DNA of 64,000 nucleotides from Octopus bimaculoides (taxonomy: Eukaryota), in NCBI RefSeq assembly GCF_001194135.2, contig NC_068989.1, positions 59,994,476 to 60,058,475 on the forward strand. Direction: 5' to 3'. The position numbers were made by a program, and so were the translations under genes. The first letter of the stretch is position 1. Each line of letters begins with the position of its first letter. The notes under the pieces are model-generated. The model was not told the DNA's origin. It searched no databases and saw nothing but the letters and a program-made list of their open reading frames with translations. This document shows positions 3,112 through 62,328 of the stretch, piece after piece.

Positions 3112-3153
3112 TTACAGAACCGGTTTCGATCCTTGAGATCTTTTCAACAGTAA
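3112..3153 (-). ncRNA. Minimal type-I hammerhead ribozyme motif, U3-A8 core variant
   Basis: Minus strand: UUACUG-UUGAAAA-GAUC(UCAAG)GAUC-GAA-ACCGGU-U-CUGUAA. Helix I is 5/6 paired, helix II has 4 bp, and helix III is the palindrome ACCGGU. Confidence 0.6.
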
Positions 3154-3640
3154 ATATGAATAATAGATTTTTGAAAAATTATTGAAAAATTAAATTTTGG
3201 TAAATTTAAAAGAAATATCTTTTTAAAGACATATTTGTATAGTATTCAAGTAACAGCGGCATTTTTCTTGTTTCTGCCTGTCTCTGTCTCACTTGTTAAC
3301 TCTTGTGGGTTCGAAGAAGGAGTCCTATGATAGCAGCAGTGTTAATTGGTTGGGTGTCCTGACATTGACCTGTTGATGGTCGTAGTGATCTGTATTGTTT
3401 ATAATGTTTGCGTGGGTGGTATTCTAGACAACAGTAGTAGTACTAAAGTAAGGGAGGAGGTGGTGGAAAGGAAGAATAAGATGACGGAGAAGTTGAGGGA
3501 TGGGGAGAAGGAGAGAAATAGTAATAATAGAATGCAGGATGGAGTGATAGTAACTAGTAGAGTGAGTAGTGATTGGGGTTGTTTTTTTAATATTTTTAAA
3601 TTTTTTTATAATTCCTTGCGTATCTATTTGGAGTTTATCA

Positions 3641-4264
3641 TCTATATCTATACTATATATAAAACAGAGATGTGTGTGTAATCGCTTATCACGTGAAAAC
3701 GGCTTCACTATTTACTTCCATACTTGTGATGCATGAATAATTTGACCTCGGATAAATCTTAGGCTCTTCATTTGATTTTTTTAATTAAAAATAAATAATA
3801 TTGCTTTATATTTATGATTCACTTCTTTAAAAAGGTTCCTCAATGTCAACTTCCGGTATTGACGTAACAACGGCTTACATACTTTTATTTCAATTACTCT
3901 TGTGAGGATATTCACGTAAATCATTTCTTTCATTTAATCCCCATTTTAATTTTCGTAAAAGTTTCCAAGTACCATCATCATCATCATCATCATCATCATC
4001 GTTTAACGTCCGCTTTCCATGCTAGCATGGGTTGGACGATTTGACTGAGAACTGGTTAAACCGGATGGCAACACCAGGCTCCAATCTAATTTGGCAGAGT
4101 TTCTACAGCTGGATGCCCTTCCTAACGCCAACCACTCAGAGAGTGTAGTGGGTGCTTTTACGTGTCACCCGCACGAGGGCCAGTCAGGCGGTACTGGCAA
4201 CGGCCACGCTCAAAATGGTGTCTTTTATGTGCCACTCCCGAGCAACGCCGGGTGCCTCTGCTAG
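3641..4264 (+). mobile_element. Non-autonomous Helitron-like element
   Basis: A|TCTATATCTATACTATATATAAAA 5' end; 3' hairpin CCCG-AGCAACGC-CGGG (4237-4252) then CTAG|T. The same 3' motif recurs at 36727-36753. Confidence 0.65.
3973..4235 (-). mobile_element. Retroposon 3' end with (ATG)n tail (RTE-related tail), nested in the Helitron-like element
   Basis: (CAT)n followed by GTTTAACGTCCGCTTTCCATGCTAGCATGGG...GGATGCCCTTCCTAACGCCAACC, a tail motif I recall from RTE-associated retroposons; no clear TSD. Confidence 0.6.
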
Positions 4265-4853
4265 TTTTTAATATTTGTGTGTGAGTTTTATTCTAAGGTC
4301 GTGGTGGATATGTCATTCGTTGTAGATGCGTTCAGAAGGGGTCTGTATTTTGTGATGAAGAGAGATTCTTTACTTATTCTTTAGCTTATACAACCTACAT
4401 ATATATATATATAGAAAATCAACTAAGTCCCATTGTATTTTTCACGTTTGTTTCTTTGCTTCATTTTAATTGCTCAAATGTCTGTCCTGATATCTTGGAA
4501 ATTACTGAATATAAAAAGCATTTTAATAATGATTACCAAACAAAAGAGGAACAATTTTTTTTTTCCAAAATTTTACTTTATTTTTACTAAGTGATTTTGA
4601 TAAGTTGGCCAAGCTCTATTTCACATGTCATATCAGGAAGAACTCTAGGGAAAAGAAAATCACTTAAAAACATTAGAAATACATGATAATAAGAAAACAT
4701 GCTCCCGATATTTTCATTCGTTAACACTTTGTTGAAAATAGAGGCCTATATATCTTTCGTCTACGTAACAGTGAAAGGGATTTGTCTATCGAACGTATTT
4801 TTATCTGTTATGTTAAACTTATTTAACTTCTAGGCACTAACATTCAATTGTAA

Positions 4854-5729
4854 TGTTCGGGCTAAATTTGGCTGTTTGCATAAAAGGAAAAAAACCCTAA
4901 AAAAAAAAGCAATATCCCATCCAAAATAAAGTAGTTTAACCCCTGCCGCAAATATCAACTATTACCAGGAGATAATAATTTACTCAAAGTAGCCGTGCTC
5001 GACTTCCACTACGGCATCAAGACAACTCTGGAACCTGGCGCATGCGTTCCTCACTGTGTCTCTGGGAAGCTCTTCAAGCACCTTGATCTTGGCTATCGGC
5101 TCAGCCTTGGTGTTTCAGGCAGAGTGGTTGATGTCTTTCTCAACTGTACTCCACATATAGCAATCCATAGTATTACAATCGGGACAATTAGGAGGACAGA
5201 AATTATGCTGGTGAAGTCATGGAAATTCTCCGACAGCCACTTCCGACTCTTTCCGGAGATATGGAAAGGAGCCGAATCCTGCTGCCACACACGTGGCCTT
5301 CCACAGCAACCCTCTCTAGCCAGAGATTGACCACAGTCTCCAGCAGCCGTCTAAATTGAGCCTAAGTCCCTGCTCAAAGATGTAGGGATGAATATCAGCG
5401 TACGCCTGCAGTGCCCCTTCCTGCTAGCCATAGCTTCGTAGGCTCCATTGCAACTGTCCATGTCACATCTTACAGGCTTTATATTGCTCTCAGGGCATTC
5501 AACAGCAGTCACGATATCGGCATCTTGATAGCCGGTGTGAATCATGATGATGCAGGTAACGCTTTTCCAACATTCAGATGGCTTCTAATCCTCCATATCA
5601 GCTAACTTTTTCTCGAATACATCTTTAATCTTTTTGCTCTCTAACGCCATTGACAGTTCACCAATGTATCAATCTGTTCCTGAATAAAAGAGACATAAAA
5701 ATCGTCGAATTTAGCCCGAACAACCTGTA
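4854..5729 (-). mobile_element. Internally deleted Tc1/mariner element, maT (DD37D)-like
   Basis: Inverted repeats TGTTCGGGCTAAATT (4854-4868) and AATTTAGCCCGAACA (5708-5722) followed by ACCTG|TA. Minus-strand WQQDSAPFHISGKSRKWLSENF matches the second catalytic D region; the frame is disrupted. Confidence 0.8.
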
Positions 5730-60086: not shown

Positions 60087-60581
60087 AAGGCGGCAAACTT
60101 GCAGAATCAGTTGCGCAAAAAATGCTTGGCGGCATTTCTTCCGGCCGAAACTTCTTGAGTTCAAATTCTGTATGAGTCAACTTTGACTTTCATCCTTTCG
60201 GAGTCTATAAAATAAGCACTAGTTGAGTACTAGGGTTGTCGTCATTCCCCTAATATTACAGGCCTTGTGCCAAAATTTGAAACAGTTTTCCATTTCACGA
60301 AGATTTTTAGTTCTAATGAAGAAAGGAAATGCTTTTTCTTATAAGGTTTTAATATTCTTAAAGTCAGAAGGCGGCGAGCTGGCACAATCATTAGCATGTC
60401 AGGCAAAATGCATAGCGGCATTTCATCCATCTCTACGTTCTGTGTTCAGATTCTCCCGGGGTCGACTTTACCTTTCATGCTTTCGGGGTTGATAAAATAA
60501 ATACCAGTTGACTTCTAGGTTCGATCTATTCGACTTAACCCTTCCTCCGAAATTCCTGATCTTTTGCAAAAATTTGAAACC
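60087..60581 (+). mobile_element. Two tandem diverged SINE family C copies (60087-60283, 60368-60581)
   Basis: Each has an AAGGCGGC head, a TTTCAT.CTTTCGG..T.GATAAAATAA core and an AAATTTGAAAC end. Confidence 0.82.
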
Positions 60582-61992
60582 AGTGGTGTTAAAATAAAAT
60601 TTAAAGCATTAGCATTCTTATAGAAAATCAGTTTGGATGTCATACCTAATATGTCGGTTTGAAAGGGTTTCAGGTTCTTAATGCTTGGAGCAGTTGTGCG
60701 TCTTTATACCACCATGTAAATTTGGTGTTGTAAGACCTGCTGGAGAATAGTTGGAGGCATTTTTAATGCATTCATTTAACAACATCCCTAACATGTAGCA
60801 CTTGTTATAGAATGTGTCACAAGACACACATTAAAGTGTAAACCAAGCTGCATAGATCCATAATTGATGCAACAGTTTTTGAATATAATCGATACTCATC
60901 AATATTATATACTTTCAAGTATTGTCACTAATCACAGATTGTTTGATAAATAATTGGGTTTTTTAACTGAACAGAGTAATATTTATAAACTCAGAGTAAC
61001 ATTTATAAGAGATTGCGCTATTTCATTACATATTTCAGTCAACTCATACAGTGATTGTTCATATAATTAATCATGTTATATAGTGATATAAATTACTTAC
61101 ACACACACACACACACACACACACACACACACACACACACACACATATATATATGTTGCATGTGTATTTATGTGTGTGTATGTGGATAGTCATGTGTATG
61201 TCTTCATACATATCGATGCATACACACGCAAATACACGCACAGTGGTATATATATATATATATATANNNNNNNNNNNNNNNNNNNNNNNNNNNNNNNNNN
61301 NNNNNNNNNNNNNNNNNNNNNNNNNNNNNNNNNNNNNNNNNNNNNNNNNNNNNNNNNNNNNNNNNNNNNNNNNNNNNNNNNNNNNNNNNNNNNNNNNNNN
61401 NNNNNNNNNCTTTGAGTTTTCATGTCAGTGTTAATAATAAGACTTTTTGTGGCAAACGCTATTATTATCATCATCGTCACCATAGTAATTGTTTTAGGAT
61501 TGAAGACGGAGAAACAGCATAGTAAGAGGGCAATTTATGGAAGAATCGGTAAAGAGCTGGAAAATATGCGTCACGCTTTTGGATTGCTTACATTTTGTAT
61601 TTTGAGTTCAAACCATACTAGAATCACTTTCGCCTTTGTCATTCTGGAATATATATATATATATATATATATATATATATATAACAGATAGTGAAATACT
61701 CGAGTACATGTGAAAGCTTGATACTATTGTACATATAACTGTAATACTACTGTACACGTACCAATGTAATAGTAAAGTACAAATGTCTGTGTAATACTGA
61801 CCAACTAATAAATAAAAAGATATTAAAAATTCTAATATCACATCTGCAATAAATTTATACTGTCCACAAGTAGGATATTTATCCATTGATAATTTTATTA
61901 TTATTTTCTTTTTCAGTTCTATATTTAAGGGATGAGGAATTATGTACATTATTTACATTCGACGGATATTTGTCCTCATCTTGTTTGTTGTT

Positions 61993-62038
61993 AACACAAC
62001 GTTTAGGCTGATATACCCTCCAGCCTTCATCAGGTGTC
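61993..62038 (-). ncRNA. Hammerhead copy with G12U core mutation (probably inactive)
   Basis: GACAC-CUGAUGA-A-GGCUG(GAGGGUAUAU)CAGCC-UAA-ACGU-U-GUGUU. Confidence 0.7.
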
Positions 62039-62283
62039 TTGGGGAAATTTCGAACCTGGGTTCTCATTCCTAAGGTATTTTTCGATGTTATTGTTGTTAT
62101 TATTATTGTTATCATTATTATTATTATCATTATTATTATTATTATTATTATTCAGGTCACTGCCTGGAATCGAACTCAATTCCAGGCGGTGACCTGACTA
62201 CTACTACTACTACTACTACTAATAAAAATAATAATATCGAAAAATAACTTAGGAATGAGAACCCAGGTTCAAAATTTCCCCAA

Positions 62284-62328
62284 GACACCTGATGAAGGCT
62301 GGAAGTTTACCAGCAGAAACGTTGTGTT
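62284..62328 (+). ncRNA. Minimal type-I hammerhead ribozyme motif
   Basis: GACAC-CUGAUGA-AG-GCUGG(AAGUUUA)CCAGC-A-GAA-ACGU-U-GUGUU; core intact, base of helix II mispaired. Confidence 0.72.

Follow-up and report, generated by a model that had tools for sequence, protein, structure and literature searches.

Palindromic type-I hammerheads in a 64-kb stretch of the Octopus bimaculoides genome: probable remains of Penelope-like elements

Which kind of element carries the hammerhead ribozyme (HHR) motifs that lie in a 64,000-nt stretch of Octopus bimaculoides DNA (assembly GCF_001194135.2, contig NC_068989.1, positions 59,994,476 to 60,058,475, forward strand; called the window here), and how would such motifs work? 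A preliminary description had reported four unrelated families of minimal HHRs in this window, and all sequences that it named were found at the positions given. The motifs are probably type-I minimal hammerheads with a palindromic helix III, belonging to the 3' region (pseudo-long terminal repeat, pLTR) of Penelope-like elements (PLEs) and to short derivatives thereof. The window elements look like a known kind, already reported to be massively widespread in invertebrate genomes, of which the copies found here seem to be new, mostly decayed members.

Anatomy of the hammerhead families and expectation by chance

The conserved core C3-U4-G5-A6-N7-G8-A9 and G12-A13-A14 was found to be exact in four sites, HH24a, HH24b, HH42R and HH62R. 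All four families have a helix I of 5-6 pairs, a helix II of at least 4 bp, the A15.1-U16.1 pair and an H residue at position 17, which is U, U, A and U in HH3, HH24, HH42 and HH62, respectively. The sequences of helices I and II differ completely between the families while the pairing is retained, and when each unit was compared with the window by BLAST no cross-family match was obtained, confirming that the families are non-homologous.

HH24a is located at 24286-24349 on the plus strand and reads UCUGUA, CUGAUGA, a 35-nt helix II, GAA-ACAUGU, U17 and UGCAGA. Its helix I has 6 bp, in its helix II an internal loop separates 4 bp from 8 bp, and in one register a G is placed between A9 and 10.1. 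U17 lies at 24343 with predicted cleavage at 24343|24344, and the minimum free energy (MFE) fold recovers helices I and II (z=-2.4). HH24b (24855-24918, plus strand, U17 at 24912) is the same ribozyme with one mismatch in helix I, where a G-to-A change gives A.C, and with two changes in the helix II loop.

HH42R (42880-42941, plus strand) is composed of GUCAUA, CUGAUGA, a 29-nt helix II closed by UGGU/ACUA, GAA-AUCGAUCGAU, A17 at 42935 and UAUGGC, with a helix I of 6 bp. Its partner HH42L (42495-42556, minus strand) is decayed, as C3 is changed to U (giving U.G with G8) and the helix III palindrome is broken (AUCGAUUGAU). HH62R (62284-62328, plus strand) reads GACAC, CUGAUGA, A-GGCUGG..CCAGC-A, GAA-ACGU, U17 (62323) and GUGUU; it has an unpaired A before helix II and has kept G12, but G.A is found at 10.1-11.1. 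The partner arm HH62L (61993-62038, minus strand) shows the A bulge, G10.1-C11.1, a helix II of 5-6 bp, a G12 to U change, ACGU and U17. The combination of an unpaired nucleotide after A9 with a G10.1-C11.1 pair could be observed in HH24, in the bulge register, as well as in HH62L. HH24b, HH42L, HH62L and HH62R each have a defect inside or next to the core, suggesting that most copies are decayed.

HH3 (3153-3112, minus strand) reads UUACUG, UUGAAAA, GAUC-UCAAG-GAUC, GAA-ACCGGU, U17 and CUGUAA. It has the covariant U3-A8 core, which has been described for PLEs of Schistosoma (PMC4209133), a GAUC/GAUC helix II with G10.1-C11.1 and no bulge, and a helix I in which five of six positions are paired and one is U.U. 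U17 is at 3118 and cleavage is predicted at 3118|3117. The site is present as a single copy, the 3' side of which enters (TA)n at 3024-3065 and then the gap at 2809-3023. An alternative register, in which HH3 is read as CUGUUGA with an A6 to U change and no helix I and would hence be a chance match, was rejected, since the published U3-A8 core, 3 nt over, gives a well-formed motif. HH3 is the weakest of the sites, being a single copy, dependent on the covariant core and possessing a competing MFE fold.

The helix III sequences ACCGGU, ACAUGU, AUCGAUCGAU and ACGU are all perfectly self-complementary, as had been described. The further claim that the ribozymes are of the dimer type follows from sequence in three of the families, because ACCGGU, ACAUGU and ACGU would leave a hairpin loop of only 2 nt and helix III cannot close in cis. 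It does not follow for the 42-kb family, as AUCGAUCGAU could either close in cis with 3 bp and a GAUC tetraloop or pair over 10 bp in a dimer. Homodimers predicted with RNAcofold were mostly trivial domain-swapped duplexes and were informative for HH42R only.

Expectation by chance was determined with a descriptor built from published features of minimal hammerheads, namely the core, GAAA, H17 and a self-complementary A15.1..U16.1 segment of at least 4 nt, together with a helix I in which four or more contiguous or 5/6 positions pair and a helix II that has at least 4 bp and no more than two unpaired bases. In 1000 dinucleotide shuffles, the number of matches per window was 0.007 for the C3-G8 core, 0.021 for the U3-A8 core and 0.028 for the two cores combined, whereas five intact sites in four families were recovered from the real window. 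With the relaxed helix II descriptor used for HH62R, 0.006 matches per window are expected. The possibility that the motifs are accidental matches of a permissive descriptor in AT-rich repeats draws some support from the fact that about six descriptor variants were tried and tuned post hoc, after the sites were known, that Rfam is silent (see below) and that relaxed descriptors do match randomly. When the helix I requirement was dropped, 0.078 chance matches per window were expected and two extra matches were observed, and when in addition one core mismatch was allowed, the expectation rose to 2.2 per window. Nevertheless, four independent families stand against an expectation of 0.028, one of them is joined to a PLE reverse transcriptase (RT), and the architecture equals that of ribozymes beside intact PLE open reading frames (ORFs). 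Chance as an explanation of the motifs is thus regarded as extremely improbable, and for HH24, HH42R and HH62 in particular a chance origin is very unlikely.

Two weaker matches are set apart from the four families. The motif at 58296-58363 on the minus strand (CUGAAGA...GAAAUAUU) passes the helix-I-free descriptor and was rejected as a chance match, having no helix I, no repeat context and AUAU as its 'palindrome'. A candidate at 40585-40630 on the plus strand consists of CUGAUGA, a helix II of 5 bp and GAA-AUCGCGAU-C17, with no helix I. It sits in the central loop of a 360-nt foldback (40410-40769) bordered by (TG)n and (TC)n, and may belong to a fifth family that has lost its 5' part and has AUC as its cleavage site. 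The sequence GAAAUCGCGA is present in both arms of this foldback.

The 24-kb module and a Penelope-like reverse transcriptase

Next to the HH24 sites an RT ORF remnant was identified at 22760..23872 on the minus strand, which by tblastn matches residues 92-472 of the homologue P0038 (E=2e-62, 34% identity). It is a pseudogene, the frame of which is broken around the YxDD motif (about 23060-23140). No Pfam match was found for this ORF or its closest homologues, and a PDB sequence search also gave no match; the link to PLEs emerged only in a second round of searching, through a homologue with an RVT_1 match. The protein family has >2000 members, among which P0058 passes Pfam RVT_1. The C-terminus of the full-length member P0079 (CNCRNKNDCPLQGEC...IVYQATV...TYVGLTATAFKTRWRNHQMSF) contains, by motif inspection only, a zinc-knuckle-like linker (CxC..CPLxGxC) and a GIY-YIG-type nuclease motif. 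Since the family combines an RT with a C-terminal GIY-YIG-type nuclease, the carrier at 24 kb is assigned to the Penelope-like elements, with the domain make-up of the endonuclease-positive group.

The remnant is adjoined by a module of related repeat copies. A 5'-truncated copy, X' (23887..24120, minus strand), comprises the 3'-terminal 234 nt of the unit and forms an inverted repeat with 24426-24654 (93-96% identity). It lies 15 nt upstream of the RT ORF, in the same sense, and is head-to-head with the copies on the plus strand. The first of these, a pLTR-like unit of 530 nt (24121..24650), consists of the segments C (24121-24425) and X (24426-24650) and carries HH24a. After a unique spacer of 39 nt (24651..24689, plus strand), which matches the 30-40-bp 'tail' of PLEs, the second unit (24690..25097, end approximate, plus strand) follows with a start-to-start spacing of 569. 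It is 95.9% identical to the first and carries HH24b, but lacks its 3' part, where (TA)n and a short interspersed element (SINE) at 25140-25352 are found instead. Tandem Repeats Finder, run on 23.5-25.5 kb, did not report the tandem, as this program is blind to a 569-nt period. With regard to a location in the pLTR or 3' region of a PLE, the unit indeed adjoins the RT remnant in the same sense.

The contigs of related proteins were also inspected. In all four contigs fetched from public assemblies for full-length family members (L003-L006) an HHR was identified 25-200 nt after the ORF stop, and no HHR was found in the contigs of the closest homologues (L001 and L002). L004 (1474-1889 / 3449-3864) and L006 (1059-2022 / 2809-3772) contain inverted, 5'-truncated copies of 416 and 964 nt, respectively, which are 100% identical, include the hammerhead and precede the ORF, while the 3' end is followed by (TA)n; these two insertions look recent. 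At L006:53-80 a second, non-homologous minimal HHR with a GUU site was noticed, the architecture of which is that of HH62.

PLE insertions are known to form a pLTR by partial tandem duplication, to carry an inverted 5'-truncated copy at the 5' end and a tail of 30-40 bp, and to target microsatellites (PMC8557442). The window modules show this published anatomy: copies occur in tandem or are inverted and 5'-truncated, the tail measures 39 nt, and microsatellites lie at the flanks. The proposal that the window hosts ribozyme-bearing, RT-dependent retroposons is therefore directly supported for the 24-kb family, by the adjoining PLE RT remnant, and is supported by anatomy for the other families.

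The 24-kb tandem and the modules at 3.1, 42 and 62 kb, none of which contains an ORF, could alternatively be non-LTR retrozymes, which are non-autonomous and are spread via self-cleaved RNA circularized by a ligase, instead of truncated autonomous PLEs. Metazoan retrozymes share the ribozyme type, the 42- and 62-kb units are without ORF, and the 24-kb unit is a direct dimer in which both copies have the same start position. However, published monomers of about 170-400 bp form direct tandems of many copies (PMC7229834), whereas the sole tandem in the window comprises two 569-bp units joined to a PLE RT, and the other modules are inverted, so that a single transcript would not contain a second sense ribozyme. 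A retrozyme origin is accordingly considered unlikely. It has also been argued, in a 2026 preprint, that metazoan retrozymes derive from PLE pLTRs, in which case this explanation and an origin from PLEs overlap.

Several observations weigh against an assignment of all families to PLEs. The linker and the GIY-YIG nuclease are absent from the RT copy in the window, tblastn giving nothing beyond residue 472, and no ribozyme unit is present at the 3' end of the RT remnant itself. An RT is linked to the 24-kb family alone, and the families at 3.1, 42 and 62 kb have no coding partner in the window. Concerning the motifs, the MFE fold of HH3 favours a competing hairpin, and in HH42 the 10.1-11.1 pair is U-A without the 9/10.1 bulge, while PLE minimal HHRs typically have G10.1-C11.1 plus a bulge; a G-C pair at 10.1-11.1 is likewise missing from the PLE HHRs of the relatives L005 and L006. 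The Rfam hammerhead models gave no match at gathering score in the window or at E<=10 in three stretches of 400-700 nt. The same models also missed the control HHRs beside the intact PLE ORFs in L003-L006, hence this negative result says little for the subclass. Metagenome and viral contigs were scanned for exact matches to three words specific to the families, and a spurious 73-aa ORF ending in the HH24b core was used as search query; neither approach yielded further copies of the families. Finally, only two copies are available per family, hence no covariation statistic could be obtained.

Inverted modules at 42 and 62 kb and other features of the window

The preliminary description had placed most hammerheads in inverted-repeat modules. 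Such modules could be confirmed at 24, 42 and 62 kb, but the 24-kb ribozymes are located in direct tandem copies between and beside the arms and not inside them. For minimal HHRs, pairs on opposite strands at distances of 100-700 bp have been described (Cervera & de la Pena 2014; PMC4209133).

At 42 kb three unit copies were found. U1 (42337..42565, minus strand) contains HH42L, and its 3' end enters (TA)n and the gap at 42015-42309. U2 (42743..42864, minus strand) is a 5'-truncated copy comprising the 3'-terminal 122 nt, which forms an inverted repeat with 43061-43182 (93% identity) and is head-to-head with U3 at a distance of 6 nt. U3 (42871..43182, plus strand), the longest copy, starts 15 nt before the ribozyme core, carries HH42R and is followed by a SINE.

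The 62-kb module is a foldback of 426 nt (61948..62373) built from two head-to-head copies with 91.6% identical arms, and its centre (about 62176) consists of microsatellites and a 48-nt hairpin. It folds as a single hairpin with -259 kcal/mol (z=-32), and, judged by this model, a hairpin of about 190 bp would form if the module were transcribed. Four ancestral sequences can be reconstructed with equal parsimony. One of them, ...CAGCC-GAAAC..., would make the ribozyme canonical and matches the non-homologous minimal HHR of L006 (CUGAUGA-A-GGCAG..CUGCC-GAAACGU-U).

The foldbacks at 62 kb and at 40.4-40.8 kb might also be DNA transposons of the foldback or miniature inverted-repeat (MITE) type, or local inverted duplications, that contain or captured hammerhead-like sequence. 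Each is an almost perfect palindrome around a short loop, and its two arms share one truncation point, unlike two independently truncated retro-copies. On the other hand, no associated target-site duplication or transposase was found, PLE integration is documented to leave head-to-head inverted copies, as also seen in L004 and L006, and the microsatellite flanks fit the target preference of PLEs. A DNA-transposon or duplication origin is therefore judged to be quite improbable.

With ~33% GC, the window is AT-rich eukaryotic DNA that contains numerous microsatellites. In it 12 runs of N with a total of 3743 N were counted, twice the number of runs listed with the earlier finding. The six additional runs are at 2809-3023, 42015-42309, 43289-43953, 55197-55574, 57420-57505 and 61267-61409. 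The number of hammerhead motifs or repeat modules spanning a gap is 0, hence every conclusion is local, and the gaps bear only on how far the sites lie from each other and on where the 3.1-kb and 42-kb modules end on their outer side, at (TA)n followed by a gap. As the inverted arms are 86-94% and not 100% identical, a palindromic assembly artefact is ruled out. Several gaps adjoin microsatellites or tandem and inverted modules, in keeping with the fact that PLE insertions are known to be hard to assemble.

Besides the hammerhead modules, SINE copies that look tRNA-derived were observed at 25140-25352 (minus strand), 43183-43288 (plus strand, cut by a gap) and about 62770-62789 (minus strand); one is inserted in the second 24-kb unit and one adjoins the 42-kb unit. 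A tRNA scan of the window with ARAGORN, SINE copies included, identified no tRNA. The SINE sequence presumably resembles octopus SINEs.

When all ORFs of at least 70 aa in the window were searched against Pfam, only remnants of pogo/Tigger (CENP-B_N, DDE_1), piggyBac (DDE_Tnp_1_7 and zinc finger) and LTR-retroelement integrase (Integrase_H2C2, rve) were obtained. These remnants lie at 12703-12924 and 13529-14275 (plus strand), 18397-19097 (minus strand), and 44156-44464 and 44556-44903 (plus strand). An open frame at 32182-32604 on the minus strand ('...RPDIVIWDREEKLCTVVEISCPADVNI...'), which enters the gap at 32605-33038, had no significant Pfam match. Three further short frames, at 33848-34063 and 34170-34403 (plus strand) and 41086-41427 (minus strand), resemble the C-termini of mariner/Tc1 transposases by eye, with no Pfam match at E<=0.01. 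A minisatellite of about eight 21-nt units is present at 57588-57794.

GUU sites, proposed working and comparison with known systems

The preliminary description had also claimed that the motifs are enriched for GUU cleavage sites. A U at position 17, giving GUU, is present in three of the four window families, but an enrichment was not shown, as at least three U17 families are expected with p about 0.18 when H is drawn from the base composition of the window. Among the related PLE loci, A17 is found in four families and U17 in one. Since both copies in each two-copy U17 family carry U17, this residue predates each duplication. In classical kinetics cleavage at GUU is slower than at GUC. GUU is listed among the active NUH sites (PMC3138052). 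The suggestions of the preliminary description that GUU plus obligate dimerization slows cleavage, and that the antisense arms give rise to dsRNA, are speculative.

An active PLE would use the ribozyme of its 3' region or pLTR to cut multimeric or read-through transcripts, thereby releasing RNA of unit length. In the ACCGGU, ACAUGU and ACGU families, two sense copies would have to pair through helix III for this. The 24-kb direct dimer is the only module that offers two sense copies per transcript, and its double cleavage would yield an RNA of 569 nt (24344-24912). As the partner arm of the inverted modules runs antisense, it is not a dimer partner in cis, a point missed in the preliminary description, and on co-transcription the long duplex would trap the ribozyme. 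Because the antisense arm cannot act as partner and the duplex would bury the ribozyme, the inverted repeats are read as scars of integration and not as ribozyme design. The tandem and head-to-head layout would then result from PLE integration, by target-primed reverse transcription at a nick made by the GIY-YIG nuclease, and not from selection for an arrangement of ribozymes. The modules at 3.1, 42 and 62 kb would represent severely 5'-truncated PLEs or non-autonomous insertions derived from PLEs. Cleavage, transcription and circularization of the window hammerheads are predictions made from their sequence.

It might also be imagined that U17 together with obligate dimerization was selected as an attenuator in the PLE ribozymes of this lineage, and that head-to-head modules are kept because their hairpin transcripts, with the ribozyme trapped, feed small-RNA silencing directed at these very element families. 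Such a selected function is considered highly improbable.

The window provides a worked example of PLE-type hammerheads in raw sequence, with four families in about 60 kb, one of them with a U3-A8 core and none visible to Rfam. For annotation, it argues for minimal-HHR descriptors that include the covariant core, to be used beside the Rfam models. The knowledge of hammerheads or of PLEs is not changed by the window families.

Compared with the minimal hammerheads of PLEs (PMC4209133; Lunse, Weinberg & Breaker 2017, as cited in PMC6765202), the window motifs likewise have type-I topology, a helix I of 5-6 bp and a self-complementary helix III of 4-10 nt, which implies dimeric action. They share the unpaired nucleotide after A9 in HH24 and HH62 and the U3-A8 core in HH3. 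As in the known cases, several unrelated families are found per genome, mostly as solo motifs or as opposite-strand pairs a few hundred bp apart, and the 24-kb ribozyme adjoins a PLE RT. In contrast to these hammerheads, HH42 has U10.1-A11.1 and no bulge, HH24 has a long interrupted helix II (35 nt), U17 is found in three window families, and only one of the families here is linked to an RT.

The GIY-YIG PLEs (Craig et al. 2021; PMC8557442) are matched by the RT homology (E=2e-62), the pLTR tandem, the inverted copy, the tail and the microsatellite flanks, while the window copy differs from them as a pseudogene without the nuclease domain and without a 3' pLTR of its own. With non-LTR retrozymes (Cervera & de la Pena 2020; PMC7229834) the window modules have in common the type-I hammerhead in an AT-rich non-coding repeat, and the 24-kb direct dimer could, as far as its sequence suggests, release unit-length RNA. 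They differ in that the unit measures 569 bp as compared to about 170-400 bp, only two units are present and the other families are inverted.

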